Assembly: GCA_965240325.2 (NCBI GenBank)
Contig: OZ251232.1
Coordinates: 1,116,001 to 1,180,000, forward strand
Direction of reading: 5' to 3'
Length of the DNA: 64,000 bases
Source of the DNA: Rebecca billardiae RCC1528
Lineage: Eukaryota; Protista; Haptophyta
Part shown: positions 6,737-33,531 of the stretch, in pieces
How the letters are laid out: every line of letters starts with the position of its first letter
How positions within the stretch are numbered: position 1 is the first letter of the stretch
The notes under the pieces: model-generated
Databases searched by the model: none
Seen by the model: only the letters and a program-made list of their open reading frames with translations
What the model was told of the DNA's origin: nothing
Program-made: the position numbers and the translations under genes

Positions 6737-7837
6737 TCAGCCGAAGCCCACGTCCGGCCTGCATGGCGTCGACGGTGACCAATGCGACGGAAGCGCAGCG
6801 CCAACGGCGTACGACGCGCAGCGGACGCACCTCCCGGGTCTGTCGCCGTGGCAGCAACCGCGCCTTCGCGAGTTGGCGACCCTCGCCGCAGCGCGACACG
6901 GACAAGCCCGTGATGCCATCCGCAGAGAGATGAATCGTCGAGCATGCAACATCGACGCGCCATCCTCGTCCATGGCGCAGGCGCTGCGGGACGAGGCGGA
7001 CGTCGTCACGCCGGTGACGGATGCGCTGCGATTCGTGTGCCTGCGTGAGGAGCTCGTGCCCACTCTCGATCGCGAGTGGCACACGCTGTCGCTGTGCGCG
7101 CGCGCGCGCACAACCAACAGCTCCTCGTGCCGCCAAACACGCGGGCGCCAGACCTGTCGAAGATGCGAAGAGCGACGACCGCGTGAACGTCAACGCGCTC
7201 GTGCTCAGCGTGGCGGCCGTGCACGATGTCAACGCGACCTGCGCCGAGCCCATCATGCCCGGAGCGGACATCGGCAAGCATCCTCGCGACGACCGCTCTC
7301 GGCTGGCGGCAGGAGGACATGCACACGATCTACTCTGGCGGCTTCGTCGGTGGCGAGGCGCTCCATTACGCCATCGCGGTGGAGATGCGGCACATACAGC
7401 GCGTACCCGCGCTCGCGCGGAGCAACGGGCTACCCGCCCCGCCCCGCGTGCTGCACATTATTCCCTCGTGGGTGTGGCCCTCGCTGATGCGCACGGACGC
7501 GTACCGCACCGCGTGGGAGAACTTCACAGGTGTCACTGGTCACCCACGGCCACGAGTGAATGCTGTGGAAAGACGCGAACCCGCAGAGGAAACATTGCGA
7601 CAGCACTGGCACGGCCCGCCGACCCCCCCCCCCCGCCCGCCAGGGCACAAACTACGATTGTAATAAGAATGCTTTTACCTTTCAATAACAGCTTTACAAA
7701 CCCGGCATAAATAAACTCGGCCCCCAGCCCGGGCTGTCGGACGCAAATTGCTGCGCACGTCGTCACCCGGACACCGACACGCACGTGCACGAATAAAAGG
7801 AATGACGACAGCTCGTCGGGAGTCGGGACGCACAACA

Positions 7838-10030: not shown

Positions 10031-10585
10031 TGATTGGCGCTTCGCGCGTGTCGTGCGGTCCTTACTGTGTTTCGTGGGGCGAAGGGGCGTCCCCCTTGCT
10101 GGCGGTGGTTTCAGGTAACTGATGTTTCAGTCTGGTGAAAGCTGATGGAAGTGGCATCGAAGATTTTGGAATCTTCGTGTGCCTGCTTCCCTCGGTCGGA
10201 ATGCTCTCGGAATTCCGTTGATTGCCTTCGGGTCATTGCACGAAAGCTTCCTGTGATGATCGGGACGTCTCCTCGAAATGAAAAGAAAGTTCTGATGACT
10301 GCATGGTAGTCTCTGGTCCAGTTCAGGGTACCTTCCCAAGTGGTGAAGAATCCCTGGACCCTTGGATGTGTAGTCCGAAGACCTCATGTGTGTGCCGATA
10401 CTCCTTATCCTTGGAGTAGTAAATTGCATGAACAATGGCTGCTGTTGGCCTTGCTCTTGAATGGTGAAACCGATTGAATTGCATGATGAAAGTCTACTGT
10501 AGCTTGGCGGCTGAAATTGCTCAGCGCCTTGGAATTAAAGTCTCGAGCTGGGGAATGGCGCCGATGGCTGCCTTGGACTTTGACA
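10031..10585 (-). repeat. Copia 3' LTR (555 bp)
   Basis: Matches the reassembled 5' LTR; only one mismatch noticed by eye (~10355 vs ~17573). Confidence 0.95.
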
Positions 10586-10592
10586 CGCCCCC

Positions 10593-13500
10593 TCAATTCG
10601 AAACTGGTGTAACCATGATGTCTCGAAATTTGCTGAACTTGTCCTTGGGTAGCGCCTTGGTCAGACAATCGGCGATGTTTTCCGATGTGTGCACCTTGGT
10701 GATGTTGACTGCACCGAGGTCGACACAATCTCGAATAAAATGGTGTCGTACGTCGATGTGCTTGGTGCGCTTATGATGAATGCTGTTCTTTGAGAGATCA
10801 ATCGCCCCCTTGTTGTCCTCGTGGATCACAATGGGAGTCTTTGGAATGTTGAGGATATCGCTGATGACGTCGCGTAGGTAAACTGCCTCTTTGGCCCCTT
10901 CCGCGAGTGCGACATATTCGGCCTCACATGATGAGAGGGTTGTGATTGACTGCTTGAAGGTGCGCCACGATACTGGGCCGCCAGCATGGAAGTAGATATA
11001 GCTTCCGGTCGAGCGGCGATCTTTTGTATCGTTGGCCCAGTCCGAGTCCACAAACATCTCCGTCCGTGGCTGAGTAGCAGTAGCCGTTGATGTGAAAGTG
11101 ATGCCGGAATTCTTTGTCCCGGCCAAGTACCTGAGCACTCGCTTGGCACCTTTAAGGTCGTTCGAGCTTGGGCTTGCCATGTGCCTTGCCAACATATTGA
11201 CTGCATAGCTGATGTCGGGTCGGCAGGTGTTCATGATGAATAGTAGCGCTCCGACAATTGCTCGGTAGGTCTTTGATTCCTCCGGCGAGCACGATGATGA
11301 ATCGTCTGTCTCGACTGCTGTCGGATGCTCTGCTGCCGATCTGCACGGGTTGTCGACGGGCGTAATGTCGCTCATGTCGTGCTTCTTGAGGAGATCGGTG
11401 ATGTACTGTGACATGGAGATAGTCGTCGACTTGGGCCCCTGGGCGATACTCATGCCTAGGAAAGTCGTTGCTGGTCCCAGATCCCGGAGGGTGAATTCTT
11501 TTCGAATTTCTCCGATAATCGAGCTGGGTCTTGCGCTGTCGGGGGAGCTGCTCAGAATAAGCAGGTCGTCCACGTACACTGCGATGACGTCGATGATGTC
11601 TCCTGAGGTGCGGACGAAGATGCACTCCGACTGTGTGAGTTTCTTGAATCCTTTCTCTCGCAGTTTCTGGCTGAGGCGGATGTGCCATCGTCTGCCGCTC
11701 TGCTTAAATCCTGGAAGGGCCATATCCCAGTCAGCCGCGACCACGTGTCCCTCGGGTGGCTTGAGGGCACACGGGTACAGCGGGGGTAGCGTAGTGTAGA
11801 TCTTCAGGCCGTCCTCCAATGGGGCTTGGAGGTACGCCGTACTCACGTCTGCGGAGTGGATGATCCAAGGTCTTTCTGGTGTTCGTAGCTCCGTCGTCAG
11901 TGCCAATAGGAGGCGTACGTTCTCGTACCGGATAGTAGGCGAGAACACCTCGTCGTAATTGACTCCTTGAATCTGGCGGAAGCCTTGACCCACCAATCTT
12001 GCCTTGTACCTTTCGATGGTACCATCTGGATTGGCTTTGACCTTGAAGACCAGCTTCGATGGGATAATTGCTTTCCCTTTGGGAACAATTACGGGCGTGA
12101 ATGTGCCCAGCCTGTCGTGGGCCTCGTATTCTTCCATGATAGCCCTTGTCCAATCGGATGCTTGCTTGCTCTCCATCGCTTCCTTGAACGATGTAGGTAC
12201 CGGGATATCTGATGCGAGCTGCGCGAGCTGCGCGCGCGCGCGCGCGCGCCGCGTCGGCGGGAAGTATGACTTGCCAGTCATGTTGCGAGTCCGCTGTGGG
12301 CGGCGATCGGCGGAGGGAGGAGGCTGCTTTGGCTGCGGTGGCGTATTGCTCTGCGATGGTCCGCCTCCAGCTCCGGGGCCGTCTCCATCACCGTCGTCGC
12401 CGTCGCCATCATCTCCCTTCTCGTCGTCGTCGGGGTTGTCCCTGTCGTCCTTGTCATCGTCGTCTGATTCCTCGTCCGGCGATGGCGGATCGTCTCCTCC
12501 GCGCTCGGAGTCGCTGTCGGCGTCACTGCTGCTGCTGGAAAACTCTTCGTCGCCCTCCTCCTTGGTGTTGCTGTCACGGGTCTTACCAGCATCTGCACCT
12601 TGAGGAGGTCGCCGAGCGTTCCACGCCAGCAGGGGGTCCCGAATTTCGCGGATCTCCTTGAAATGCGTAGAGATTCGATCCAAAATGACTTGCTCGTTGA
12701 ACTTGACGTGCCGAGTGATGACGATTTTCCCGTCGTCGGCACTCAAAACGATGTATCCGTGCGATCGCTTGATGGTGCCTCGCTCGAAGATACCGTCAAA
12801 TCCGTATCCCAGTAAGATGCCCTCCCGCGCGCGCGGGAGTAGCTTGTTCTGCTTGTTGATCGACTGTACGAGGTAGATGCAGGGCGAGCCCCAGACTCTC
12901 AGCTTTTGCAGGAAGGGCCCGGGCGAGGTGCCAAACATCAACTCGTGCGGTGAAACCAGCTTGCCATCGCTGGTAGGATGCTTGCTCATCAGGTTGCGTT
13001 GCGCGGCAGCGCACTTGGCTGCCCAATACCACCATTTGTGGTGTACGCCTGAGAGGTACAGCATTGTCCTCGCGTCATTCATGATGACTCCGAGGCCACG
13101 TTCGGCGACGCCGTTCAGCTGCTGCGTGTGGGGGGGCGACATGTAGTTGCATAGCATGTCGTACCTGCGAAGGACTCGGTTCCAATTCTTTGAGTGTAAC
13201 TCTCGGCCTCCGTCGAGGTGAATGGTGCATCCGGCGATGCCCTTGTTCTGCATGGTGGCGGATAGAGAGTTGGCTCCCATCTCGCTGGCCATGAGGTCGA
13301 GCTTCTCCGGCGCTTCAGCCTTGTTTTGCATGTCGTAGAAGCGCATGTATCCGGAAAAATCATCGATGAATAGAGTTCCCCACCTTGGAGTCTTTGCGGG
13401 CAGCCCGTTGATGGGCCCGATGACATCGTTGTGGAGCATCTCGAGCGGTCGAGTTGTTCTCTCACGTGTGCCCGGGAACGGCTTGGCCTTGAACTTGGCA

Positions 13501-16500
13501 ACGTCGGAGGGCTGGTACGTGCAGGGCGATGCCTCCGACATCTTGTCGTTCGCGCGGTAGGTTGCGCGTACACGCTTGATATCGGCATATCCTAGTCTGG
13601 ATTGCCAGAGCGTGATCTTCCGCCCGTTCTTGATCGGGTCGACGTCTGGTGGCACGTCGTCCGCGGTGGCCGGCATGGCTGTCTCGGCCTTGGGTACGAC
13701 TGCCTTGAATCCGACCGTGTTGTCGGGGCGCAAATGAACCCTCTTGGGGCCGATGCGGATGTATGGTCGTTCGTCGAACACCACAGCCATTCCGACCGCG
13801 GCGAACGCGTTGACTGAAAAGAGAGTAGTATCGAGATCTTCGACTCCGACAACGTTTTCCAGGCACACCGGCACGGTTGTGTCTGAGTCGGCGTCGAGTA
13901 AGTATACGTACATGTCGCCTGCCTTGGATGCGTGTAGCTCAATGTCGCGCTTGGCAACCTTGACAGACATGCTGATCGGGTGAGCATTGTGTAGCAGGCC
14001 GAGGTTGATATCGACAAATGATTGGGACGCGCCCGAGTCCAGATACGCGTATTGCGTCGGCTCGAGATCTGCGTCATCGGGTTCCGGGTCGATGTCCTCG
14101 TCTTGCACCATCTGGGCCCGCGGCCTCCCCGCCCGCTTTTGGGGCGGAGGTACTTTGATGAACTTGCCGTCGCGCCCGCCGGGCTTGGCGGGCGGCTTGA
14201 AGTTGCCCTGCCTTGGTGCACCGGGCGGCCTGGGTGGCCGCAAGTCTGGATGTAGCTTCCAGCACCGCTCTGCGGTGTGGTTGCGTAGCCCACAGTGCGA
14301 GCACGTGACGGCTGGTTGTCGGCGGTCCGCCTCCTCAGTATTGAGAGCGTGCGCGGGACCACCCCGCTTGGGGTCACGTTGCGTTGCCTGTCGTCCCTTG
14401 GGCGACTGAGTCCAACGCCTGTATGCGTCCTCGATCTGGGCGGTGAGCTGTTCGGTCTGGGCCACGCACTGCTGGGGCGACATTGAACCGTAAATAGAGA
14501 TGACGGTCGAGTAGACCTCTGGGTGCTCGTGCATCCCGTTGTACAACTTGAAAACGAGGAGTGTGGCGTCGTCTAGCTCTCGATAGCGTGATGCGCGTAC
14601 CATCTCCACCGTTTGCTTGATCATCTCGGGGCCGCTCACCGGGGTCGGTCGGTCCGGGTAGAGCTTCTTGAACTCAGCTCGGAGCTCCGACATGGTCGAT
14701 ACGTTCAGCTCGTGCTCGAAGATCTCGAGCAGAGTGTGTAAATTCAGGAAATTCTCATTCGGATTCACGATGTGCCGTTTCGACTCGAGGTACGAAAAGA
14801 GACTCGGCAGCATCATGTCCTTGATACGCTTGAAAAGTACTTCCACCGATCGCTCGTAGACGATCGTCATCTGCATGATGGTGGTGTCCGCGTCCATGTT
14901 TGCGAATGCGGTTGCGTACGGTTCCCGAATAGCATTTTCGGCTGTCCACACGGCGGCCTCGGCCAGCGCGTATCCGGAGAGCCTGGCCTCGACGGGGGTG
15001 ACCATGGACGACGTAGTGTCGGTCGCTCTTCCCTTGAAGGAAGCCTTGACCTCGGTGACTGCGTCCTTGATCGCTCCGTGGATAGCCATTTTCGATTTGA
15101 TTGTGAAGAAATTCAGCTTGTAGCTTCCGACGCCAGGCTGGCTTGTCTGCACAGCCATCATTGCATGTGCGTCGCGCAAGTAGGTGATGCAAGCTTCGCC
15201 TCCATTTCTGCGCGTTCGTGGTGACGCGTCGAGCGAGCTTGTCTCAATGTGGTCCTCTGCTGTGGCATAGCTGCCCATGTCCGACGATGTAGAAGACTCG
15301 TCCCCATCGCTGCTCTGCTGTGCGCTGTTGTCGTCACCAGTCGTGGCAGGTGGGTAGGTTGTGACACCACCAGGTGGGCCGTCGTCAGCCGGCGAGTGTC
15401 CCTCGCTCGCTTCAGAAGTCAGCCCATAGAACTCTTTGTGCAGGAAGCATGCGACACCTGGCTGTAGGAGTGCGTCATTACAATGGAACATGAGATCGAA
15501 CTTGCTTTGGTGAAGCTCGTCCCTCTCCCGCACATAGTCTCCAACTGTGTAGTTGTGACCTTGCCGCTCTGCGGCTGCTGCGATGAAGCCTCCCGAGTAG
15601 ATAGTGCATCGTTTGGATGGCCGCCAAGGGCAAATATCATCGAGGCTGGCGCCTGCGTCGTTCACGACGCTCAGGCTGCGGCGATCAGCCGCTGCGACGG
15701 GTCCGTCCTGCCGGTGGAAGTGAATGCCATCATCATCAATGTCAATCCCGTCGTTCATCGCTGCAAACTGGATAATCTGCTCACATTCGAGCTGATGCTG
15801 AACTTGGATGGCGTCTGCGCATCGGTAGCTGCAGACTCTGCCCATCCCACAGATGATGCATTCGAGGGTGCAATGCATCGATGTGCACGACTGATTGTCG
15901 CATGGCTGGCGCGACTTCGGATCATCGTCGTCAATCTCACTCCACTGGCTGCAGTAGATGCCGTTGCCCATGTTCTTGCGCGTCGGGATCTCCGGGATGA
16001 TGCAATCGAAGGTCTCGCCTACACCATACCAACTGCTGACAGACAGGAGGGGGTAAGTGCACAGGTATGAGGACATGCGATGCTTGTCGCGCGCAGCGTG
16101 TTCCCATGCTGTCTTGTTGCAGCACAGGAAGGATTGGGGCCGATCAGTCGGATCGCTGCACATACCTCCAATGGTGAGGATGTCGTCTCCCATGTCCATC
16201 GGATCCTGGTAGACGAGTCCGTTGATGTCCATGGCCGCATCGGTGAGCACGCTGAGGACATCATTGAGGCTCAGCGCGTCCAGCGGCGGGGTCGAGCCGC
16301 GCGCGAGATCGTCGAGCTGCGGCGCGAACTCCTCGAACGGCTCCGACCGCTGTTCGCCAGTGATCTGGCCCGGGTCGAAGGGGTAGTGGCTGTGCGGCTC
16401 CTTGAAGTTGGTCACGACGCTGATGGTCGGGATGTCGCCCGCCATCGCGCCCGCCTCCGGCGCTGCGACGCTGCTGCCTCCATGCTGGTCGTGTCCAGTC

Positions 16501-17249: not shown

Positions 17250-17641
17250 GATTGGCGCTTCGCGCGTGTCGTGCGGTCCTTACTGTGTTTCGTGGGGCGA
17301 AGGGGCGTCCCCCTTGCTGGCGGTGGTTTCAGGTAACTGATGTTTCAGTCTGGTGAAAGCTGATGGAAGTGGCATCGAAGATTTTGGAATCTTCGTGTGC
17401 CTGCTTCCCTCGGTCGGAATGCTCTCGGAATTCCGTTGATTGCCTTCGGGTCATTGCACGAAAGCTTCCTGTGATGATCGGGACGTCTCCTCGAAATGAA
17501 AAGAAAGTTCTGATGACTGCATGGTAGTCTCTGGTCCAGTTCAGGGTACCTTCCCAAGTGGTGAAGAATCCCCGGACCCTTGGATGTGTAGTCCGAAGAC
17601 CTCATGTGTGTGCCGATACTCCTTATCCTTGGAGTAGTAAA
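17249..17641 (-). repeat. Copia 5' LTR, Gag-proximal piece
   Basis: Matches 10031-10423 and breaks at GTAGTAAA. Confidence 0.95.
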
Positions 17642-23600: not shown

Positions 23601-26600
23601 GTGTGCGCCGCCGAGCCGGTGTCGGTCAGCACTCCGTTGTGGTCGTTGTACGGGTAGCGCACGTAGTTGGCTGCGGCCTCGCCGAGCGGCACGGCGGCGT
23701 GGCCCCCCTGCGGCACGCCGACGCACAGCGAGCGGATGGCGAGCGCCAGCCGCGAGCGCGACACGACGTAGCGCTTGCGCAGTCGCCGCTCGCCGCTCGC
23801 GGTGGTGGGCACGACGACGACGTAGTCCACGTCCGTCGGCAGGCGCGGCAGCCAGCGGCTCACCTTCACGTCGTCGATGAGGAAGGTGATGCAGCCGCGC
23901 TGCTCGAGGCCGGCGCCGCCCTGGAGCGCGTGCAGGGTGGCGGCGCACGCGTACTTGCCCAGCAGCTGCAGCTCGAACTCGGTGCACGGCAGCAGGTACT
24001 CGGACACCGGCAGGAAGTGCATGTTGTTGTGGTGGAGGTCGCTGGACATGTCGCCGGCGGGGCTGGAGAAGCCCGAGTAGGGGTGTGCCTTGAGCTCGTT
24101 GTTGTCCGGCGTGCGGCGCCGCGCCGCGCTGGTGTTGAGCGCCATGCAGATCTTGCACATCACGCGCGACTTGGGCGCGCCCGGATAGCGCTGCGCGCGC
24201 GGCTGGCAGTCCCACGGCGCGGCGATGACCGTGTTGAACCCTGGGCGTGCGCTCAGATCGGCGCCGGAGTCGTGGCCAATGTTGCGCACCTGCAGGCACA
24301 CGGTGCACATGCCAACGGCGTGCTTCTCCTCGCCGCGGCTGAAGGTGAGCATCGCTGCGCACGAGTGCGTGTTCGCGTGGATCAACCCCTGCACGTGCTC
24401 CGGCGGGTCGAAGTCCGGAGTCGGCGGCGGGATGCCGGTCGCGCCGGTGGCGTCGGCCTCGTCGTCGCTCATCGGGTCGCCGACCAGGTGGCCGTCGGTG
24501 GGCGGCGGCGCGCCGGGCTGCGAGGCGGCCAAGGGGGCGGCGCCGCTCGGCGTGGGGTGCGGTTTGGAAAGCGCCGAGTCGCGCGCCGACGTCTGCGAGC
24601 GCAGCACGCGCGAGTGTCGCGGCGCCGCCATGCTGGTCACGCCGGTGGCGTCGGCCTGGTCGTCGCTCAGCGGCTCCTCGGCGACGTGGTCGTCGGCGCG
24701 CGGCGGCGCGCCCGGCTGCAAGGCGCCCACGGGCGCTGCGCCGCTCGGCGTGGGATGCGAAGCGGATGGCGCCGAGCCGTGCGCTGGCGCCTGCGAGCGT
24801 AGCACGCGCGAGTGCCGCGGCGGCGCCGTGCCGCGGTTCGGCGCGGCGAAGTCATCGAGCGCGTCGCACGACTCCTCCATGTCCACGCGCATGGCGTCGG
24901 CAACGGCTGGGAGCCCGGCGATGGGGGCGGCTGGGCTCGCTGTCGCGTCCGCGGCGTTGGTCTCCGCGGCGAGCGCGGGGTCGGAGGCGCGCTGCGCGAT
25001 ATGCGGCGACGGGTGCGAGCGCGCCGACTCGCGTGCGCCTTCGACACACGTCGCCATCGCGTCGGGCTGCGCGCACGTCCCTGCCACGTCGGCAAAAGAC
25101 TTGCCCGTGAGCGCCGTGAGCAGCATCAAGCGCCGCCACTCCTTGGGGTCGAACGGCTGGCTCATGCCGCACGGCGCGTGGCCTCGCACGGTGTCGAGGA
25201 CGTACGCGAAGACGAGCACCGCGCAGTGCACCGTGCCCGGCACCTGCCGCGCCATCGTCAACGGCCGCTCGCGCGCGCGCTCGAACACGCGCCACGTGGA
25301 GGGGCCGCGCCGCGCGCATGTGCGCGGTGTGCGCTGCTGCTGGGCCTCGTGCGCGTCGGCGAGCAGCAGCTGCACGTTCGAGACGAACCCGATCATGTCG
25401 CCTCCGCCCAGGGGCTCGCGGTACTCGATGATCTCGCGCCGCAAGTCGACGAGCCCCTGCGCCCAGTGGTTGCCGTCCTGGTTGATGATGAAGGAGAGCA
25501 CGTCGTACTCGTTCAGGTCGAAGAGCGCAAAGATGTCGGCCACCTTCTCCCACGCGTACACGCCCGCACCCATGAGCAAGGTCCACACCCACGAGGGAAC
25601 GTGCAGCACGCGGGGCGGGGCGGGCAGCCCGTGGCTCCGCGCGAGCTCGCGTACGCGCTGCATGTGCCGCATCTCGACCGCGATGACGTAGTCGAGCGCC
25701 TCGCCGCCAACGAATCCGCCAGAGGAGATCGTGAGCATCTCCTCCTGCCGCCAGCTGAGATCGTGTGTCGCGAGGATGCCAATGTCCGCTCCGGGCACGA
25801 TGGGCTCGGCGAAGGTCGCGTCGGCGTCGTGCACGGCCGCCACGCTGCGCAACAGCGCGTCCAGGTCCAAGCGCTCGTCGGCGCTCGCCGCTCCGCGCGA
25901 CAGGTCCGGCACTCGCACGTTCGGCGGTATCAGGAGCTGTTGGCGGTGTACGCGCGCGCAGTGCGAGAGCGTGTGCCACTCGCGATCGACGGTGGGCACG
26001 CGCTGCTCGAGCAGGCACATGAAGCGCAGCGCATGCGCCACTGGCTTCACGACGTTGGCCTCGTCCCGCAGCGCCCGTGCCATGGTGGAGGATGGCGCGA
26101 CGATCTTGCACGCTCGGCGTTTCAGCTCGTTGCGGATGCCCGTCTGGGATCGGCGATAGCGCGTTGTCGCCTCAGTCGCCGACTCGCGAAGACGCGGTTC
26201 CTTCCACGGCTGCAAACCCGGCAAGTGCGTGCGGTGCGCGTCGTACGCCGCTTTGCGCTGCCCCTCCGTCGCATTGGTCACCGTCGACGCCATGCAGGCC
26301 GGACGTGGGCCCCCAGGCGCCGAGCGATCTTTGGCCGCGAGCTCGCGAGCGTGAAAGATGATCGCTTGCTCTTTTCAAGGGAACGCCATCGACCGTAGCA
26401 AACGGATTTGCATGCGCCCGACCTTGCCAACCGGGGCACGCGACAGTCCGGTGTGCGGATTCCGGCGATCGAGTTCAGAAGGCCGCGCCAAACCTTGCGT
26501 CGCGTGCGATGGCGCTTCCCGCCCGCGAGACGCCTCGTGATGAGGGCCTTTCCGCACCGAGCCCCACGCGCGGCGGAGGATCGCGCGAGGCGGCCATCGT

Positions 26601-27033
26601 GCGCAGCGCTTGATGCTATGGCCGGTGCGACCTTTCGACGTGCACGTCGGGCGAGGATCGCCCCAAGTCGCACGATCGTGTCGACGCGCCGAGCGTACCG
26701 CATCAAACGGGTCGATTTGGGCCCCGTTCGACCTGCACGCGAGACGACGAGGGCAGCAATCGCGAATCGGGCGAAAACACCGTTCGGGAGTCCTCTCACG
26801 ATGTCCGCGCCGGCGTTGGATTTGGCGCGCGCCGCCCACGCGCTCCGCGCCAGGCGCCATATGGTTTTCGGCCGAGCGTCCCCAGTGGGAGCTGCGAGGG
26901 CGCCCGGTAGTGAGCGAAGCGACCCGGCAGTGAGCGAGGCGATTTTCTTTTCTTTGCGAGGCGATTTTCTTTTTCTCTTTTCTTTTTCTTATCTTTTTCC
27001 CGGGCACTACAAGGGGCGGACCTACGGCCCGCC
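17642..27033 (-). mobile_element. Autonomous Helitron2/Helentron-type rolling-circle transposon (9.4 kb)
   Basis: Precise insertion into a T-run of the LTR with no TSD. 5' hairpin GGCGGGCC-GTA-GGTCCGCC. Asymmetric inverted repeat ACGGCCCGCC ~30 bp from the 3' end. 3' end terminates in Ts. Confidence 0.9.
18158..26293 (-). CDS. RepHel transposase (2711 aa): Ulp1-like protease, DUF6570-like region, HUH Rep, PIF1 helicase
   Basis: Protease NHWAQGLVD...YREP...Q...HCAV. LPRLP...VSR...NPAF region. Rep YEYAELRSFIHSH (HUH) and YVCDYAFK. Helicase GEAGTGKS, APTGAAA, IDESSM, GDPSQLDPV, LTEQKR, KVQGIT, YVAFTR. Confidence 0.92.
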   Translation of the reverse strand: MASTVTNATEGQRKAAYDAHRTHLPGLQPWKEPRLRESATEATTRYRRSQTGIRNELKRRACKIVAPSSTMARALRDEANVVKPVAHALRFMCLLEQRVPTVDREWHTLSHCARVHRQQLLIPPNVRVPDLSRGAASADERLDLDALLRSVAAVHDADATFAEPIVPGADIGILATHDLSWRQEEMLTISSGGFVGGEALDYVIAVEMRHMQRVRELARSHGLPAPPRVLHVPSWVWTLLMGAGVYAWEKVADIFALFDLNEYDVLSFIINQDGNHWAQGLVDLRREIIEYREPLGGGDMIGFVSNVQLLLADAHEAQQQRTPRTCARRGPSTWRVFERARERPLTMARQVPGTVHCAVLVFAYVLDTVRGHAPCGMSQPFDPKEWRRLMLLTALTGKSFADVAGTCAQPDAMATCVEGARESARSHPSPHIAQRASDPALAAETNAADATASPAAPIAGLPAVADAMRVDMEESCDALDDFAAPNRGTAPPRHSRVLRSQAPAHGSAPSASHPTPSGAAPVGALQPGAPPRADDHVAEEPLSDDQADATGVTSMAAPRHSRVLRSQTSARDSALSKPHPTPSGAAPLAASQPGAPPPTDGHLVGDPMSDDEADATGATGIPPPTPDFDPPEHVQGLIHANTHSCAAMLTFSRGEEKHAVGMCTVCLQVRNIGHDSGADLSARPGFNTVIAAPWDCQPRAQRYPGAPKSRVMCKICMALNTSAARRRTPDNNELKAHPYSGFSSPAGDMSSDLHHNNMHFLPVSEYLLPCTEFELQLLGKYACAATLHALQGGAGLEQRGCITFLIDDVKVSRWLPRLPTDVDYVVVVPTTASGERRLRKRYVVSRSRLALAIRSLCVGVPQGGHAAVPLGEAAANYVRYPYNDHNGVLTDTGSAAHTPLRGRFFRRDRMPNPAFHDVNVRHESLASLPEGAVPNDLFVVRVPPGHPDAGAADADVNGRPRWTRAGDDAEVDADEVAGFVQIPADVDVHEALMQSLADSVGEAARDAYVRSGRGVAAAALQRRRAALVDPWKTPGFWSGLFVRVFSGGGGDGTLSTEKTLDALHWIEHVTWAAPGRVAAHPLVGIVLQRLRMQKQASGQAAFGINAHLNEPDLPVETMRERVEAGDETIFNALYGLTGNVPGTSSSTKTKMKEMLAMYHERTFTEVENMECMPPSFVFFSRACAEYWWLPLARALRDAAAEHATAAAAAMGNDAAAARRTTLELWEHKPRAQLRDAIRSMPQIVTAYFDWRCVNFHNTVGIHADHMNDAMWKYEYAELRSFIHSHGCGVSHAASRAVNGARHKAERATRDEKGEGRPPEEPIDADDDGAPAERAKSVREWDETFRRHFATQLHAVLHTTAADEYVHDDELGCEVRRADGWSTWQVDSYHPAGTTWNDDSNAHEPNTAEWGKPAGTARVPRGAAHPCARTLPEMYGSEAKLFRWRIDSCNASCMHTCMCSYCLHKVKEAIRSDEDGETHWKCRFGIATFDKRLVLAEARAIDSGDGHFVQHGRHYRYESPTDCWPRLAQPRSGTSWQGNNDTKLIIAVETRDSAGDLIFEHVHYVCDYAFKTHDTEDQCRRLYRSLLEPPALPPPPTDANEPRALAPPPTDADASDPTAATAHATTDATPPAAEPGHALDSAPPGAPAAASLGAPGAGAAHGAPAAAAAEPPPAGDVRTAANIAYSFALRAVGLVPLRHQQANHLNSGTPITRQTARPVRVGMGGGRVLRARPTALMPNGEPAPRPPTSIWPSSRVEAKKPVMQQYIDYREERIDEGHSEWLSLHEWLVRCQCARNTSPPDTCPCQRNLFVQATGVTYMVSWPMQQGWATMQLLLHSRRRWFTEADVLVMLDGQPAASAHDALLDACWLDENDDGELRRSVESCDTHANELPCSHVPHARGERWASGEFPPGVVELIKHAHTASTFRGRRRAAQAAACARQRATERRQREQEERAPAADARDADGETDASDSERDDGADRARTANDLEALASAARVAPALAGGADDGVGTYTVRPAPPGFNWHAAGREALARGLAAYDCDAPTALAALGADVERALADHLPRQLASRAHSALANAAGQTTPGATANAAVRTDATVRSFELAPLDVPLLRASPSQRAAIAVTLLSMLRRATSPTTSGAAPDYQYSRLLLHGEAGTGKSVVLRGQERCAHRLFGARPAGERCAGGLAPTGAAAVSMSPRARTVASTCPERLDRKNGADDAGSLSLERVNALRALACVDQASGDLRSALELVQIDESSMLTARQFESVVMDFAQALGMPVPAAAPGARLTRMLPFDQTVAGDPSQLDPVGKNNLDWPLARLQGLQRLGGVRYRQEFVDAIVLTEQKRLQLVDDDDRALQRLQRHMKHGLLDRQDFDWAQTRVLGNMSEEERELFERVDEVMHVWGRRADVNDGNVRCVDALAAARDEPAATVRATTSVGRCRASRDPNKQVGQLPMYTHLAPSSVLVCCANGGGYPELCAPCGIANATRGTCVAAMYAPGEGAPEHQPAAVVVHHPTYKGEPIAAGWPPTWVAYAPVAKDCDAHCCSRTMVPLEPGMHVTFFKVQGITVGEKEMIKRIVVHLDFSSGLNTEALWPRSTYVAFTRPRRARDFALAASLTLENFMAINNAAWRADAEIERQRVAELDAATRARMAPHMSDEGWVALLARLDAACDDGVRDAACAAAADDDDDDRLACALDGCASCAIWRAARADGHE

Positions 27034-27110
27034 ATTGCATGAACAATGGCTGCTGTTGGCCTTGCTCTTGAATGGTGAAACCGATTGAATTGCATGATGA
27101 AAGTCTACTG
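27034..27110 (-). repeat. Copia 5' LTR, 77-bp middle piece
   Basis: Matches 10423-10499. Confidence 0.95.
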
Positions 27111-27111
27111 C

Positions 27112-30100
27112 CTGCACTCGCCTGGGTTTGCCCCTGCGGCGTACCCCCCGTTCGTCGAGGGTGGGCTGCGCGCGCTGAACACCTGCCCGGCCGGTGCGGC
27201 GCGGTGGGCGCCGGCCACCTACCGTGAACTCGCGCTCCTCACTCTCAGGGAGGTGTGCGGCTCGCGTGTCGAGCACATCATGGATACGTACTCCAATAGG
27301 CTGTCTCTGCGGAAGCGCAGCAGCCGGACTGCCCGGCTCAACGCCATCCTCGACATGACTGTGGGTGCCACGATCGAGATGGCAGTGCCCAGGGCTGGCC
27401 CCAACCTGCCGGGCCGTGCCCACACGAGCATGCTGGAGGAGAGCATCCTGCGTGATGGTGGGACCTCCGCCGCGCAGATGATACGCGCCACCAATGGGGG
27501 AGCCGCAGCAGCTGTCCTCTCCCTCTTCACAGCGGACGGCAGGAGGGCCCTCCGTGCATACGACCCCGCGCAGGAGTGGATGTGCGGTCGCCTGGCCCAT
27601 GCCTTGCTGGATGGGCTCGTTGACAACTGGCTCACCGCCCCGGAAAACTTTCTGCTCACCGGGCACCTGGGCCCTGCGGACCGGGCTGCGGCCCACGAAC
27701 GCGAAATCCCTACTGATGGCAGGCTGCCAGTGCGCGGCCTGCTGGCTGACACAGACAGGCTGATGGCCGGAGTGGATGGCTCCTACGTCCCAGGCAGGGG
27801 CCAGGGGGCAGCTGCTGTGGCATATGCGCTACCCCTCACACCGGGCGGCGAGCGCCATGCCATCACCATCTTCACAGCCACGTACCCCGGCGAGCAGTCA
27901 GCCCAGAACTCTGAGATTGCCGCTGCCACCCTGGGAGTGAAGGTGCTCTCTACTATTGGAGTGCGGCACGCCCACATAGGGTGGGACTGCGATACTGCCC
28001 TGCACCACACCCTCCGCGCCCGGCCGGACTTGACAGCCCCGGGAGAGTCTGTTCCCCGCCAGGGCACTGGCACCGCAGCCAAACTCCTCTCTGGCAGCCC
28101 CCACATGGTGCGCCTCCTCCGGCTCCTGGACATCTGCGTCCCACCGGCGTCGGGTCACCAGTGGGCGTTTCGCCACCAACAGGCAGGCCATGCGGAACTG
28201 GACCGCCTGGTTGGCAACACCCTGGCCCCACGGTGGTCGGCCCTCGACAACGCCTTCTGCGTGAGCTCGGCCCAATGTGAAGCGCTGCTGCGCATAGTGC
28301 TCGGACATGCCCCTGGCACCCCACGCGAAGCTGCGCTCCGTACGGTCTGCAACCTGTGTGCGGATTGGGCCAGCAAGCAGGTCGCCAGGGGTGACCGGCA
28401 GGCATCGTTCGCACTGGGGCCGATGGTCTGGCTGCCGTACAGAGTGTCACTGATGGAGCACGGCTCTGCCACGTTGCTACCGTCCTGCCCAAACCAGGTC
28501 CGCACCCGCGTCATGGACAGGGCGCGCAGGGCTGCGCTGGAGGCACATGCTGCCACGCCTGCTGCAGCAGCGAAGTACAGGCTCAAACTGGCTGGACCCG
28601 ACAGTGACCAGGAACCCGACCACCAGGGCGGTACCCCGCTCCCATGCGATGTCCGCGAGTCCACACACTCGCTTCAGAACCAGTGGTGCCGCGAGCGCAT
28701 CAGTAAGTTTGTGCTGCGCTGCGCGGTCGGTGCACTGGTTTACAATGCGGATGCTGTGGCAGCCACACCGGCCCTGGCTGGTGTCCGGCGACGGTGCACC
28801 AGCTCGCGGGCGACCTATGCCCTGGGCACAGAGTGCCTATTCTGCCTGAAGGCGGGGGACCCGAACCCAGGGCCGGATAGCGTGCACCACGTCTTCCATC
28901 AGTGCCCGCACGCACACGCGCAGCGGAACGCTGAGGACAGGGTGGGAGCTGCGATACGTAAGGCCGCGAATGGCGCCATCCCACAGCCCGAAGCCACCCG
29001 ACTCGCGGTCCAGGCGACGCTTCACCCCTTCTACTATGCTGGCAAGGTGACCGAGGCCACTGTCACAGCTGTGAAGCAAGCACTGGCTGCCCACCAGCCG
29101 CCTGGCGGCCAGCCGGTGCCGTACGCCGCAGGGATGATCCACAAGCCCTTGGCCCTGGCCGCCAGCAAAATCCACGACGAGCGCAGGGCGCTGAGCCTCA
29201 GCTCGGCGTATGCCAAGACGTACGACTTGGATAAGTACTGGGCCCTCCTCCATAAGCAAGGCCGGGCGGCTGCCAGCCAGGCGGAGCCCGCCCCTGCTGC
29301 TGAGGTGGCAGAGCCAGGCCCACCTGCTGAAGACTCGCCAGCCCCCGATGAGCTGCTGCAACAGCAGCCGGCCGCAGCTGCCCCACCGGCTGCAGATGCC
29401 CCCGCCAGCGATGCGCAGGCGCCCGCTGCGTTGGGGCCTGGCCTTGCTCCAGCAGCGGCGAGCCACCCCCTGCCTGCACAGCTGCTGGGCCCGGTGCCGG
29501 AGGGCGCCGCAGCTGGGCCGCCAGCGGCAGCGCACGCTGGCCTGGCTGGCGCGGCGATGCACGGCGCACAGCGTGGCAGCAGGCGGCGGCCCCGCTCGCC
29601 CGATGCAGACGCCCTGGCACACCAGGATGATAACGGTGCGAGTGGGCCCCCTGCCCAGCAGCGGCGGTTGGCAGCAGCGGCAGGCTCCACCCCTCGCACT
29701 GCGGGCCCCCCAATCGACGATGTGGCTGCCGGCCACTCTCAACACCCTGCACACCGGCGGCCCTCAGTGCGGCTGCCACCTATGCCTGCCTACGTTGCTG
29801 TCCAGCCACAGTGGCGCGAGGCGGCCACTGAGCTGCTGGCAGCAGTGGGGCATGCTGTGTACCCTACTTGCATGCATGGGGACTGCCTCCTGCTGGCAGC
29901 CATGGGCTATGTCGAGGAGCGTGCCGCCGCAGTGGGCCCCTGCACCGCCGCCTACCAGGCAGTCCGCTTCCTCAGGGCAGCTGCTGTGGACTGGGTGCTC
30001 GGCACGGCACGTCTCTCACGGACACACCGGCTTCAATTGGGGCTCGTGGACGCGGATGGACTGGAGGCCATCAGCATGTCTGACAGCTATAGGGCCACAT

Positions 30101-31365
30101 ACCATGGGCAGGGTGCCCAGCCAACCCTGCACGAGTTCGCCGGGCCGCTCAGGGCTGCAGCGAGCTACGGGGCCGATGGCAGGCTCGCCGCCGGTGGGGC
30201 GTCGAGGTACTGGCCCACTGTCATGATACCCGCGGTTGCGGCCGTCATGGGGCGTGACATCGCAGTGTTCCAGCCGCGCGCCAGCCAGACTGCCCCTGCC
30301 GGTGGGACAGCAGGCAGGCCCGAGAGCTCGGATGCAGTCGGGCACCTGGTGGCGTGCACGCTGTATAGGCACGTGCCGCGGTGGTCCAGCATGAACAACC
30401 CAGTGTATACGGACCCCCAACGCTGGCAACACCCGCAAGGGGGCCCTGCAGGTGCTCCCGCGGATCCGCGCCAGCAACAGTCGGTACGCGAACGCCTCCT
30501 TGCGCGTGACCCAACTCTTGCAGCAGTGTACTTTGATGGCACCGGGCACTACGAGCCTGTGCTGCCGCTGCCGAGCCGACCGGGTCTCGAGGACAGGGAG
30601 CGCTGCCCCACAAGCAATCGGCGCGGCAAACAGCCCAGGGACCGGCCGGACGACTGCCCTGAGGACCATGGCACAGGTGCTGGTGATGGGCCGCGGCGGT
30701 TGCCGGACAGCTCTGCGCTGCCTCCGCCCAGCACCGCTGCAGGCGCCGGCAAGCGCCCTATGCACAGGGCCTGCACAGGCCGCCCCCAGTCACCGGTGGC
30801 ACTCGCCCCCCCGCTTGGACACCCCCCGGGGTGTAGCCAGGGAGGTGCCAGCAGCAGCGCCGGCGCTCAAGCACCACCCGTCGCGCCGCGTGGCGACCCC
30901 CCCGTGGTGGGGCGTGGCCCGCCGGCCAAACGGAGCCGCCCGGATTCCGATACCCTGCAGCAGCCTCTCTGGCCTGGCGCCCCCGCTCCTGACCAGCCCA
31001 GACCCCCGACGCCTGCGGTGCCGGAGGCCCCGCCCCTACGCAAGTCTGCCAGGCTGTGCCAGCGCCGCACGCGCGGCGCGGCCATGACTGCAGCTCCACA
31101 CCGGCAAAACGACGCTTCGCGCGCACCCGGCGCGCCGACACAGCCTGCCCGGGAGAAGCCAGCCGGGCCTGACCTTGGGCAGCAGCCATACATGCAGGCC
31201 AGCATGAGCGGCGGGGTGGCATCAGAGCCGGCCCCGGCCCGCAAACGCAAACAGCCGGACGCCCCGGCCCACACAGCTGATGCGCCAGCAAACCCTGCTC
31301 CGGGCCACAGAACCCTGCCGCCGGCTTTGAGGCCGACACGCCACACTGGGGCACATATCACCTGA
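27112..31365 (+). CDS. LINE ORF C-terminal part: RNase H, CCHC zinc finger, OTU-like cysteine protease (RT missing)
   Basis: RNase H VDGSY, SAQNSEIAAA, WDCD, NLCADWAS. Zinc finger CLFC...DSVHHVFHQCP. OTU-like HGDCLLLA...YWPTVMIPAVAAVMGRDIAVF...YFDGTGHYEPV. Confidence 0.75.
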   Translation: MHSPGFAPAAYPPFVEGGLRALNTCPAGAARWAPATYRELALLTLREVCGSRVEHIMDTYSNRLSLRKRSSRTARLNAILDMTVGATIEMAVPRAGPNLPGRAHTSMLEESILRDGGTSAAQMIRATNGGAAAAVLSLFTADGRRALRAYDPAQEWMCGRLAHALLDGLVDNWLTAPENFLLTGHLGPADRAAAHEREIPTDGRLPVRGLLADTDRLMAGVDGSYVPGRGQGAAAVAYALPLTPGGERHAITIFTATYPGEQSAQNSEIAAATLGVKVLSTIGVRHAHIGWDCDTALHHTLRARPDLTAPGESVPRQGTGTAAKLLSGSPHMVRLLRLLDICVPPASGHQWAFRHQQAGHAELDRLVGNTLAPRWSALDNAFCVSSAQCEALLRIVLGHAPGTPREAALRTVCNLCADWASKQVARGDRQASFALGPMVWLPYRVSLMEHGSATLLPSCPNQVRTRVMDRARRAALEAHAATPAAAAKYRLKLAGPDSDQEPDHQGGTPLPCDVRESTHSLQNQWCRERISKFVLRCAVGALVYNADAVAATPALAGVRRRCTSSRATYALGTECLFCLKAGDPNPGPDSVHHVFHQCPHAHAQRNAEDRVGAAIRKAANGAIPQPEATRLAVQATLHPFYYAGKVTEATVTAVKQALAAHQPPGGQPVPYAAGMIHKPLALAASKIHDERRALSLSSAYAKTYDLDKYWALLHKQGRAAASQAEPAPAAEVAEPGPPAEDSPAPDELLQQQPAAAAPPAADAPASDAQAPAALGPGLAPAAASHPLPAQLLGPVPEGAAAGPPAAAHAGLAGAAMHGAQRGSRRRPRSPDADALAHQDDNGASGPPAQQRRLAAAAGSTPRTAGPPIDDVAAGHSQHPAHRRPSVRLPPMPAYVAVQPQWREAATELLAAVGHAVYPTCMHGDCLLLAAMGYVEERAAAVGPCTAAYQAVRFLRAAAVDWVLGTARLSRTHRLQLGLVDADGLEAISMSDSYRATYHGQGAQPTLHEFAGPLRAAASYGADGRLAAGGASRYWPTVMIPAVAAVMGRDIAVFQPRASQTAPAGGTAGRPESSDAVGHLVACTLYRHVPRWSSMNNPVYTDPQRWQHPQGGPAGAPADPRQQQSVRERLLARDPTLAAVYFDGTGHYEPVLPLPSRPGLEDRERCPTSNRRGKQPRDRPDDCPEDHGTGAGDGPRRLPDSSALPPPSTAAGAGKRPMHRACTGRPQSPVALAPPLGHPPGCSQGGASSSAGAQAPPVAPRGDPPVVGRGPPAKRSRPDSDTLQQPLWPGAPAPDQPRPPTPAVPEAPPLRKSARLCQRRTRGAAMTAAPHRQNDASRAPGAPTQPAREKPAGPDLGQQPYMQASMSGGVASEPAPARKRKQPDAPAHTADAPANPAPGHRTLPPALRPTRHTGAHIT

Positions 31366-31676
31366 GGGCCGGGCCTTCTGTGTGATAAGCTACCCCAGTC
31401 ATGCCGCTTGATACACACCTTCCCCAACTGACAGTGGGGCTCTACATTCCCTACTACATCCTCATCCTGTCGGCGCGCTGTCGCATCGGCGCCCAGTCGG
31501 CGAGTTCGGACGACGACGTTTTGTGGACGACGGTGGGGCGAGGACGACGGGCGCTGGCGCGCCGCGAGGCGGCCGCAGCCCTCATCCAGGCCTCGCAGGC
31601 GGACGGCTGAACGAATTTTTCCGGCGGCGCTACCATCGGCGACGGCTTCATGGGCGGTGACAGTTGGCGGGCGTCA

Positions 31677-31725
31677 ATCTCGCCTGCCTGAGCTGTGTGC
31701 GTCTCTTATTCTTAGTAAACTGTAG
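31677..31725 (+). repeat. 49-bp unit, copy 2 (3' terminus of the LINE insertion)
   Basis: ATCTCGCCTGCCTGAGCTGTGTGCGTCTCTTATTCTTAGTAAACTGTAG. Confidence 0.9.
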
Positions 31726-31808
31726 CTTGGCGGCTGAAATTGCTCAGCGCCTTGGAATTAAAGTCTCGAGCTGGGGAATGGCGCCGATGGCTGCCTTGGA
31801 CTTTGACA
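31723..31808 (-). repeat. Copia 5' LTR, outer piece
   Basis: Matches 10500-10585 and is followed by the TSD TATAT. Confidence 0.95.
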
Positions 31809-32750: not shown

Positions 32751-33038
32751 ATATGCTATATTTATGATATATATGTGATATATATATATCATATATATAT
32801 GCTACACTACAGCCAGTACATGCAGGAATAACAGGTCAGCGCCTGCATCAACGTGCAGTACGAATCAGAGCGGTGGCTCGTCATCTGAGTGGGCTGGCCA
32901 GTGGCTCAAAGTCAAGGCGGCGCGCATCATGAGTGAGCATGCTGCATGCATGTCACAATCATGCTTCCAGTTCCTCACTGCTCAGCCGCCCCTCGTGCCT
33001 CGCCGCTCGCGCTGATCGCATCGCGCGCTAGGCGGGTG

Positions 33039-33089
33039 CTACAGTTTACTAAGAATAAGAGGTGTGCACACAGCTCAGGCAGGCGAGAT
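33039..33089 (-). repeat. 49-bp unit, copy 3 (51-bp variant)
   Basis: Flanked by CTAGGCGGGTGCT (33028-33040) and CTAGGCCGGTGCT (33093-33105), a 12/13 TSD-like duplication. Confidence 0.85.
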
Positions 33090-33531
33090 TCACTAGGCCG
33101 GTGCTGAATGCTCTCATTCCAACGAGGCGACGACTCTTCACTCGGGCGGCCACCTCAGTCAGCACTGTCACATAATGCCATTATTGACTGATTGAGTTGA
33201 CATGCGCTCTTAGATCGTGTCAGGCGCGGCCAAGTCGACGACAGTGACGACACGGAGCAAGGAGCATGCCAGCGTTGCGAAGCAACGCGCCGCTTTCGCA
33301 CGGCAACTCGACGACCGAAGCGCCGCACGCCGCGCACGCGCCAACGGCAAACGCCCGACGCTTAGCGCCCCTCGCCAAGTTTTTGCTGCTAATTTTATTT
33401 GCATTTTATTCCGCGCCCGCGCGTTTTTGCGGTACGAAACCGCCTGGCACTAGTTCTGGCAGCCCCGTGCGTCCGCTGGCAATCTGGAAATCGGAGATGC
33501 CTGGCCGGCTTCTCGGCGGCTACAGAGGTCA

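Follow-up and report, generated by a model that had tools for sequence, protein, structure and literature searches.

Three nested, recently active transposable elements and their accessory domains in the haptophyte Rebecca billardiae

A minus-strand Ty1/Copia retrotransposon, one of whose long terminal repeats (LTRs) is split in three by a Helitron2-type element and a LINE, spans positions 10031-31808 of the DNA studied here, and we regard this locus as very probably a one-off nest of no unusual kind, built from three transposable element (TE) families that are active at present; the extra protein modules are traits of the families and not of the locus. The accessory proteases and the finger are of kinds that have mostly been described before, and they do not speak for any particular defence by the host. 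By itself the nest carries little weight; its value is that of a natural example with an intact sister LTR, which gives exact empty sites and so fixes the target rules of the two invading elements (T^T for Helitron2, ACTGTA for the LINE).

A Copia LTR interrupted twice

The window is a 64,000-nt stretch of Rebecca billardiae RCC1528 (Haptophyta), taken from the forward strand of contig OZ251232.1 in assembly GCA_965240325.2 (positions 1,116,001-1,180,000), and all coordinates below are positions within it, position 1 being its first letter. Copia and Helitron lie on the minus strand. The DNA of the region is 65-74% GC, and long spurious frames overlap on both strands. The features of the nest are as follows.

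10031..10585, minus: intact 3′ LTR of Copia, 555 bp, TG...CA; empty-site reference for both later insertions
10593..17249, minus: Copia polyprotein frame, 2218 aa, from Pfam and motifs read in the translation
15783..15902, minus: Cys cluster of the Copia protein (aa 450-489) with MYND-like spacing, read directly from the sequence
17241..17249, minus: 8-nt palindrome TGAGCTCA directly after the upstream LTR, at the expected tRNA primer site
17249..17641, minus: upstream (5′) LTR piece 1, LTR positions 1-393, 393 bp, 99.7% identical to 10031-10423
17642..27033, minus: autonomous element of the Helitron2 type, 9392 bp, inserted at T^T without duplicating the target
18158..26293, minus: Helitron frame, 2711 aa, with a C48-like domain, repeat linker, DUF6570, candidate Rep motifs and SF1 helicase
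25217..25774, minus: putative Ulp1/SENP-type (Peptidase_C48) domain, aa 174-359, from Pfam, PDB and BLASTP
27034..27110, minus: upstream LTR piece 2, LTR positions 393-469, 77 bp, 100% identical
27111..31718, plus: 5′-truncated LINE copy, 4608 bp of a family of approximately 10,531 bp, without APE and RT
27772..27999, plus: RNase H-like segment of the LINE with a DGSY motif (weak Pfam RNase_H, 13.3 bits; dN/dS 0.11-0.19)
28834..28911, plus: Cys/His knuckle of the LINE, C-x2-C...H-x-C, read from the translation
29767..30594, plus: C-terminal papain-like Cys/His domain of the LINE, with motifs Cys934 (HGDCLL), YWPTVMIPAVAAVMGRDIAVF and His1155 (GHYEPV)
31719..31808, minus: upstream LTR piece 3, LTR positions 466-555, opening with the same ACTG in which piece 2 ends

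Joining the three upstream pieces (17249-17641, 27034-27110 and 31719(31723)-31808) restored an LTR that differed from its intact sister at one of 555 positions (T/C at 10355), with the insertion points at LTR positions 393 and 469. The nesting of three elements proposed in the initial annotation was thus borne out to the base by the LTR pieces and junctions, as were its nearly identical Copia LTRs, its two hits within 77 bp of the 5′ LTR and its three frames free of stops (2218, 2711 and 1426 aa). That all three families were recently active also held: they are young and multi-copy, judged by LTR identity and by copies that are 95-100% identical. The nest could be ruled out as a duplicated composite because the junction between LTR and LINE occurs only once in the genome.

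The Copia protein is encoded by a single uninterrupted frame in which a pre-Gag extension (approximately aa 1-900) is followed by a CCHC knuckle (aa 983-996), a protease motif (LDSGAS, aa 1070), the integrase SH3 segment (Pfam SH3_retrovirus, aa 1445-1521), RVT_2 (aa 1716-1969, E 6.8e-49) and RNase H. Its LTRs are direct repeats, with TATAT on both flanks inside a (TA)n run that leaves the length of the duplication ambiguous. No tRNA primer binding site was found next to the 5′ LTR, where the sequence TGAGCTCACGGG holds no TGG...-type tRNA complement; the palindrome occupies the place of the primer site, and the last A of the LTR together with TG forms the ATG of the frame. Full-length copies in the genome number at least 12; they are 99-100% identical and keep frames of 2226-2229 aa open.

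For the Helitron2-type element, comparison of the empty site in the sister LTR (CAATTTAC) with the filled site (CAAT/...GAGTT/TTTAC, slashes marking the junctions) revealed insertion at T^T and no duplication. Its 5′ end, TGGCGGGCCGT, recurs inverted as ACGGCCCGCC near the 3′ end, giving an asymmetric terminal inverted repeat: the 5′-terminal GGCGGGCCGT is complementary to ACGGCCCGCC, which lies approximately 35 nt from the 3′ end. This arrangement is present in all three copies of the window, the termini being common to non-autonomous relatives at 4405-7637 and 51350-52861, and in the genome as a whole autonomous copies number about five, of which four retain long open frames, alongside over 100 derivatives. 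The copies are 98% identical (differing by about 2%). Within the frame, a DUF6570 match at aa 756-857 scored 20.9 bits, below the cut-off of 24.3, and a Pif1-like SF1 helicase (AAA_30 at aa 2146-2267, 37.2 bits versus a cut-off of 27; AAA_19, 27.9 bits) follows candidate Rep motifs that we located by eye (HSH at aa 1283-1285, YVCDY at aa 1563-1567). For the HUH Y2 Rep domain, there was no Helitron_like_N match in this frame and no PDB match to its Rep-helicase part.

The LINE copy, with an open frame of 1426 aa (27085-31365, plus), shows CTG microhomology at its 5′ junction and a duplication of ACTG at the target. Full-length copies elsewhere have one 3371-aa frame with Exo_endo_phos (30.6 bits) and RVT_1, for which the best PDB matches of the reverse transcriptase were R2 proteins (E 8e-12, versus 5e-6 for L1). 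A complete, RT-less element of 4.6 kb was ruled out on inspection of other copies, which extend upstream into RT and APE; because its endonuclease and reverse transcriptase are missing, the copy in the window is, as judged from its sequence, a dead 5′ truncation and not autonomous. Copies across the genome are 95-99% identical, and many are 5′-truncated tails. Another candidate, a second LINE family with the C-terminal domain (L033/L034), turned out to belong to this one family as well, as a frameshifted and degraded remnant. After the Cys/His knuckle, neither a PD-(D/E)xK motif nor a match to a restriction-like endonuclease was detected, and a PDB sequence search with the middle part of the LINE returned nothing useful.

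The junctions show that the nest began with a Ty1/Copia element entering a (TA)n run, after which the upstream LTR took both an autonomous Helitron2-type rolling-circle element at T^T and a LINE, shortened during insertion, at an ACTGTA site. The empty site in the sister LTR confirms that ACTGTA was present before the LINE arrived, and at 17/17 family junctions ACTGT(A/C) comes right after the LINE 3′ end. Only two distinct ACTGTA sites exist in the whole Copia element; one lies in the hit segment, which at 44.6% GC versus a median of 67% is among the 2% most AT-rich local stretches. The closeness of the two hits may therefore reflect a rare AT-rich LTR patch that bears the preferred target motifs of both elements. 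Since the ACTGTA and T^T sites lie in this patch (about 45% GC), target choice would explain the double hit within 77 bp with no need for special biology, a reading that is based on one locus and the family junctions rather than on genome-wide insertion-site statistics.

Evidence for the accessory modules

The initial annotation had assigned a Ulp1-like protease to the Helitron2, an OTU-like protease to the LINE and a MYND-like finger to the Copia. The first of these was upheld, and the Helitron family is characterized by a Ulp1/C48-type protease near the N terminus of its protein. Pfam Peptidase_C48 matched the domain alone with 23.0 bits against a cut-off of 20.7, but fell below the cut-off (18.6 bits) when the whole protein was scored; a six-frame genome search with the C48 profile likewise gave 23 bits for the Helitron domain. 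All PDB matches to the domain up to E = 10 (8/8) were SENP1 or Ulp1, with E between 0.03 and 0.06, and BLASTP linked it (E 1e-7) to the metagenome protein L035:6-731, a clear C48 protein at 70.7 bits. A length- and word-limited protein homologue search with this region had no match. Among the catalytic positions, His276 (NHW), Gln348 and Cys357 are present, and Glu292 stands at the Asp position (YREPL in the Helitron versus YYDSM in SENP1 and MLDPL in L035). A single-sequence AlphaFold model of the domain was disordered (mean pLDDT 39.7). Together, the Pfam, PDB and L035 matches support a C48/Ulp1-type assignment.

The LINE protein ends in a papain-like Cys/His domain that has diverged strongly and is likewise a family trait. 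Its dN/dS between subfamilies was 0.11-0.18, as low as in the RNase H, versus 0.5-0.7 in the linkers, so the domain is under strong purifying selection (dN/dS of about 0.15). What stood of the OTU proposal was this constrained domain and an OTU-like order of motifs read by eye (HGDC934LL, then YWPTVMIPAVAAVMGRDIAVF as the central W...A.A...I.V region, then GH1155Y); what did not stand was the family identity, for which Pfam, PDB and HMMER gave no backing. The OTU profile (PF02338) had no match at E<=10 in the whole LINE frame or in the domain alone, and none of the 14 genomic OTU matches (0/14) fell in the LINE family. Neither the entire domain nor its two halves drew a useful match from PDB sequences; exhaustive HMMER returned two matches that were both repeat-driven artefacts (a repeat protein and an LRR protein); and a viral scan found nothing, nor did a length- and word-limited protein homologue search. 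Protein-language-model (Atlas) features placed OTU clusters nearest, at 0.94 with 191 of 256 shared, recognition being below the stated level. The single-sequence AlphaFold model was again disordered (mean pLDDT 34.1). The OTU name, drawn from motif spacing and protein-language-model leads, is thus unproven.

The Copia protein carries, as its own family trait, a putatively zinc-binding Cys cluster ahead of Gag, with the pattern C-x4-C-x4-C-x3-C-x2-C-x5-C-x3-C-x7-H-x3-C. Compared with zf-MYND (C-x2-C...C-x2-C...C-x3-C...H-x3-C), its second half is exact (C-x2-C-x5-C-x3-C-x7-H-x3-C) and its first pair is C-x4-C. Here the proposal survived as a conserved cluster with MYND-like spacing but not as an identified MYND finger: zf-MYND (PF01753) gave no Pfam match even at E<=10, a PDB sequence search produced only a collagen chain (E 2.1, not meaningful), and a metagenome scan and a length- and word-limited protein homologue search were both without a match. 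The nearest Atlas cluster was zf-MYND at only 0.80, a lead only, so the MYND label denotes a match in spacing whose identity is unproven. In a second Copia family with a 52% identical RT, the cluster persists in the same relative position (40-42% identity), and nothing else of the pre-Gag extension can be recognized there; by the identity tables, the pre-Gag region shows 91% protein identity where the DNA is 93% identical.

Of the profile and structure checks named in the initial annotation, then, only C48 passed, in Pfam with the domain alone; the other two modules had no match and the two models were of low pLDDT. Neutral evolution, which it had named as evidence to the contrary, is not what we observed in at least two modules, the LINE domain being constrained by dN/dS and the Copia cluster by conservation across families.

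Possible roles of the modules

The least probable reading, that one or more of the modules is a chance Cys/His pattern in a frame kept open only by 65-74% GC, is already largely refuted. Although it would account for the missing Pfam, PDB and HMMER matches of the LINE and Copia modules, the many long spurious frames overlapping on both strands and the disordered structure models, it is at odds with a LINE domain as constrained as its RNase H, with a Copia cluster that persists in a distant family and with the significant link of the C48 domain to a bona fide C48 protein. We consider it most likely that the two proteases serve the giant proteins of their own elements, by stripping ubiquitin or SUMO from them or by cutting them into parts, and that the Copia finger is a protein-docking module. 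That the proteases only cut their own polyproteins (3371 aa in the LINE, 2711 aa in the Helitron), like viral papain-like proteases and with no host substrate, seems to us somewhat unlikely. Each protein is encoded in one very long frame, its domains set apart by Pro/Ala-rich linkers that evolve fast in the LINE next to its constrained protease, and both protease families include viral self-processing members; however, for the Dualen protease the reading put forward in PMC8557442 is interference with protein degradation. If they process only their own proteins, these non-LTR and rolling-circle elements would have a solution akin to that of retroviruses.

The initial annotation had favored counter-silencing or targeting devices, acquired independently under SUMO/ubiquitin-based TE silencing in this lineage, which we judge decidedly unlikely. 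Two protease-type modules and a finger do occur in three TE classes of one genome, at least two of them are under constraint, and at least 16 of the 23 Peptidase_C48 matches in the genome belong to the Helitron family. Yet the OTU and MYND identities are unproven, and MYND fingers are protein-docking modules for which we know of no SUMO or ubiquitin activity. Moreover, identical domain-TE pairings are described in many eukaryotes (PMC11417382, PMC4640811, PMC8557442); the protease-TE pairings are therefore no marker of this lineage, and the suggested hint of a lineage-specific SUMO/ubiquitin defence is not supported. It is highly doubtful, too, that several unrelated active TE classes (Helitron2, Dualen-like LINE) keep working ubiquitin/SUMO-deconjugating enzymes, and Copia a co-repressor-docking finger, because the host marks TE proteins or chromatin. 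Were such marking by SUMO/ubiquitin real, the locus would be a sample of a genome-wide arms race, and proteases acting on host conjugates would offer a route by which TEs of a little-studied algal group evade control.

Comparison with known elements

The Copia element resembles other Ty1/Copia elements in its TG...CA LTRs, in its Gag knuckle, protease, integrase, RVT_2 and RNase H in Copia order, and in flanks consistent with a 5-bp target duplication. It differs in the pre-Gag extension of approximately 900 aa with the MYND-like Cys cluster, in the palindrome that replaces the tRNA primer site and in its one unbroken frame of 2218 aa. We found no published description of a Copia clade that has such a pre-Gag extension and conserves a zinc cluster within it, and the sequence-orphan papain-like domain that selection has kept at the end of the LINE is likewise a variant without a description found in the literature.

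Judged against Helitron2/HLE2 (defined in PMC3627910; see also PMC11417382), the rolling-circle element is typical in its T^T insertion without duplication, the inverted copy of its 5′ terminus close to the 3′ end, a protease domain and a DUF6570 match that both precede the candidate Rep-helicase region within one frame, and a swarm of non-autonomous derivatives with identical termini. In the HELIANO survey of eukaryotes, Peptidase_C48, OTU and UCH are listed among the domains that Helitron-like elements carry stably (PMC11417382). Unlike those elements, the one described here has a very divergent C48 domain (23 bits), with Glu at the catalytic Asp position, and a candidate Rep recognized by no HMM.

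LINEs of the NeSL and Utopia groups carry a Ulp1-like protease (PMC4640811) and so share with our LINE a polyprotein that includes a domain of a ubiquitin-like-modifier protease family. Their protease is N-terminal and of the Ulp1 type, whereas the domain here is C-terminal and of another type, and those elements have a restriction-like endonuclease only.

The Dualen/RandI LINEs were reportedly described by Kojima and Fujiwara in 2005. As relayed in PMC8557442 and PMC9977147, these Chlamydomonas elements combine APE, RT and RNase H with a restriction-like endonuclease and with a cysteine protease of the Josephin-like type, the last belonging to a deubiquitinase family and speculated there to be protective. 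Our LINE departs from them in that no restriction-like endonuclease motif was confirmed, a search of 1.84 billion representatives yielded no sequence relative, the motifs of the protease resemble OTU (GDCLL ... HY) rather than Josephin, and the 3′ junctions always abut ACTGT(A/C). In common with them, it has one giant frame with APE at the front, an RT closest to the R2 type, an RNase H after the RT (weak, 13.3 bits), a Cys/His knuckle and a C-terminal domain like a cysteine protease of a deubiquitinase family, and it belongs to a family that is young, active and often 5′-truncated.

Structure of the nest and choice of target sites

Self-comparison of the window recovered the contiguous 555-bp stretch at 10031-10585 a second time as three pieces, bearing out the initial annotation's claim that a Copia LTR is interrupted twice within 77 bp. 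The parts of the nest are as follows.

10593-17249, minus strand: Copia open frame, 2218 aa, a single frame between the two LTRs
17249-17641: upstream LTR piece 1, 393 bp, 99.7% identical to the intact LTR
17642-27033, minus strand: Helitron2-type element, 9392 bp, the first interruption, at LTR position 393
27034-27110: upstream LTR piece 2, 77 bp, 100% identical to the intact LTR
27111-31718, plus strand: LINE copy, 4608 bp, the second interruption, 77 bp further along the LTR
31719-31808: upstream LTR piece 3, 90 bp, 100% identical to the intact LTR

Rejoining the pieces leaves one base, at 10355, at variance with the intact LTR over 555 bp, in line with the earlier description of the LTRs as almost identical. 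The LTR ends are TG...CA, and the outer flanks of the Copia are TATAT on both sides, within a (TA)n run. The open frame contains an integrase SH3 domain (aa 1445-1521) followed by RVT_2 (aa 1716-1969, E 6.8e-49), with a CCHC knuckle (aa 983) and a protease LDSGAS motif (aa 1070) recognized by eye. The element at 10031-31808 is a minus-strand Ty1/Copia, which makes the split LTR its upstream (5′) one, as had been proposed. At the expected tRNA primer site, an 8-nt palindrome, TGAGCTCA (17241-17249, minus strand), adjoins this LTR, and the ATG of the 2218-aa frame is formed by the last A of the LTR plus TG. Other copies of this Copia in the algal genome (G000), on contigs C14 (177666-186494) and C32 (409394-420706), have LTR pairs 8.3 and 10.7 kb apart, compared with a usual spacing of 7.2 kb, and probably also hold later insertions.

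The Helitron target, read from the intact LTR, is CAATTTAC, which became CAAT-element-TTTAC, the element having entered between two T's and duplicated no bases; ACTG stands on either side of the LINE insertion. At LINE 3′ junctions, ACTGT(A/C) came next in all 17 readable independent cases, and the sister LTR shows ACTGTA to have been present at the target before the LINE inserted. Distinct ACTGTA/TACAGT sites number only two across the entire Copia, and the struck segment (10410-10510) has a GC content of 44.6%, whereas the median for 100-bp windows is 67% and only ~2% of them are at or below 45%. Given the ACTGTA rule, the scarcity of such sites, this AT-rich patch and the Copia's own (TA)n surroundings, the 77-bp spacing is sufficiently accounted for by a preference for rare AT-rich target motifs, judging from one locus and the family's junctions. 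Duplication of the nest as a composite was ruled out because the LTR-LINE junction occurs once in the genome. Further short 3′ LINE tails, each with ACTGTAG next to it, lie at 1104-1152 and 33038-33100 (both minus strand); the window has 12 ACTGTA/TACAGT sites, and 3 of them abut a LINE tail.

The Helitron2-type element and its Ulp1-like domain

Three marks reported for Helitron2/HLE2, namely T^T targeting, an asymmetric inverted repeat and DUF6570 (PMC11417382), have counterparts in the window element. Its 5′ start, in its own (minus) orientation, is TGGCGGGCCGT, with the complement ACGGCCCGCC about 35 nt ahead of its 3′ end. The 2711-aa frame matches DUF6570 at 20.9 bits, under that profile's cut-off, and an SF1 helicase (AAA_30, 37 bits); a Rep domain had no HMM or PDB match, with candidate HUH and double-Tyr motifs seen by eye only. 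Both termini are shared with two non-autonomous relatives in the window, at 4405-7637 (minus strand) and 51350-52861 (plus strand), whose termini are 82-93% identical and which retain ~750 bp overlapping codons 1-240 of the autonomous element's frame. The genome has ~5 autonomous copies (96-97% protein and 98% DNA identity), four with long open frames, and well over 100 deletion derivatives.

The Ulp1-like protease reported in this element was supported at the sequence level. Peptidase_C48 scored 18.6 bits in the whole protein, 23 bits in a six-frame genome search, and 23.0 bits against a cut-off of 20.7 when aa 150-420 were scanned alone. All eight PDB matches were SENP1 or Ulp1 (E 0.03-0.06), with alignments that take in the catalytic His in NHW, and a clear C48 protein (70.7 bits) on a metagenome contig, L035, matched the domain at E 1e-7 with INQDGNHW in common. 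His276, Gln348 and Cys357 are present, and Glu292 occupies the catalytic Asp position. The predicted structure has a pLDDT of 40, and the Helitron copies are only ~2% apart. Deletion-derivative families at 98% identity (e.g., C18:1217118 and C3:4502541) have their breakpoints within C48, following nt 501, 418 or 325 of the sequence used as domain query; on C3, three derivatives sit in tandem as an array of 2127 bp. Between C48 and DUF6570, a 198-bp tandem duplication within the frame (24422-24817, 82% identical) gives the linker two Pro/Ala-rich repeats (RHSRVLRSQ...).

The LINE C-terminal domain and the Copia cysteine cluster

The initial annotation implied three intact elements, with stop-free ORFs; the frames are indeed open, but the 1426-aa LINE frame, which had no Pfam match, is open only because it is entered from the LTR. 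Other copies extend further upstream, two of them (99.8% identical) sharing 10,531 bp (C12:1140162-1150692) with one 3371-aa frame that holds Exo_endo_phos (aa 821-1054) and RVT_1 (aa 1531-1814). Since these run on into the APE and reverse transcriptase, both absent from the window copy, the window LINE was dead on arrival, a copy truncated at its 5′ end, and CTG microhomology marks the break; many such tails in the family give the classic LINE pattern. In PDB, R2 proteins gave the better match to the RT (E 8e-12, against 5e-6 for L1 ORF2p). With its APE, R2-like RT, RNase H and C-terminal cysteine-protease-like domain, the family resembles Dualen/RandI as characterized in PMC9977147 and PMC8557442; a restriction-like endonuclease, sought in the LINE frame, was not confirmed. 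The first ~820 residues before the APE, at 2225-4684 of the excised full-length locus L011 (C12:1140224-1142683), matched no Pfam family.

The C-terminal domain, described earlier as an OTU-like protease, is real, as substitution patterns show, and selection on the element maintains it. When real copies of the 99% subfamily were compared with those of the 95% one by Nei-Gojobori counting, the pairs being non-independent with one deep branch in common, dN/dS was 0.11-0.18 for this domain (~21 synonymous and 8-10 non-synonymous changes), 0.11-0.19 for the RNase H-like part, 0.5-0.7 for the Pro/Ala-rich linker and 0.4-0.6 for the tail. The OTU label itself found no HMM or fold support: Pfam at E<=10 and a word-indexed protein search returned nothing, PDB sequence searches nothing relevant, and HMMER against 1.84 billion representatives just two repeat-driven artefacts; a single-sequence structure model had a pLDDT of 34. 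The motif order is a GDC934LL box, the YWPTVMIPAVAAVMGRDIAVF segment and a GH1155Y box, and the nearest clusters in the Atlas of protein-language-model features carry OTU (0.94; 191 of 256 features shared), a lead only. As PMC8557442 and PMC9977147 report the Dualen protease to be Josephin-like, the OTU label for this domain is tentative.

The MYND-like finger attributed to the Copia agrees with that family in part of its ligand spacing. Its cluster (aa 450-489), C-x4-C-x4-C-x3-C-x2-C-x5-C-x3-C-x7-H-x3-C, has MYND spacing in the last six ligands while the first pair deviates; Pfam and PDB searches with it returned nothing, and the nearest Atlas clusters were zf-MYND at only 0.80. The finger lies within a ~900-aa pre-Gag extension that, against a subfamily at 93% DNA identity, has 91% protein identity, compared with 96-97% for the RT region and ~85% expected under neutrality by our own estimate; these values indicate moderate constraint on the extension. 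Three elements of a second Copia family with RT just 52% identical (C20:1632445-1636559, C15:406906-411571 and C18:519385-525870) match 53 residues round the cluster at 40-42% identity, 3.2-5.7 kb upstream of RT as in the window Copia. Because the cluster is kept across such divergence, it is an old, conserved trait of a Copia clade, and our literature search found no published description of a MYND finger in Copia elements.

Possible functions of the two proteases

Overall, the original observation is confirmed, with the truncated LINE its one correction and the domain labels partly confirmed: several active transposon classes here carry ubiquitin-/SUMO-protease-type or docking modules, and the pattern is real in the genome. 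We tentatively favor deconjugation by the two proteases that would protect the element's own protein or complex, at somewhat below an even chance. Self-processing, a possible though rather doubtful alternative, would suit proteases sitting inside 2700-3400-aa single frames and agrees just as well with the selection data. Host-directed counter-silencing, as originally envisaged, seems improbable, and other functions take up what likelihood is left. The proposed lineage-specific SUMO/ubiquitin defence goes well beyond the evidence and is unsupported, since self-processing fits the selection data equally and the same domain-transposon pairings are widespread, which also speaks against counter-silencing as a lineage trait: Helitron-like elements stably carry 20 domains, Peptidase_C48, OTU and UCH among them (PMC11417382), NeSL and Utopia LINEs have Ulp1 (PMC4640811), and a Josephin-like protease is described for Dualen (PMC8557442).
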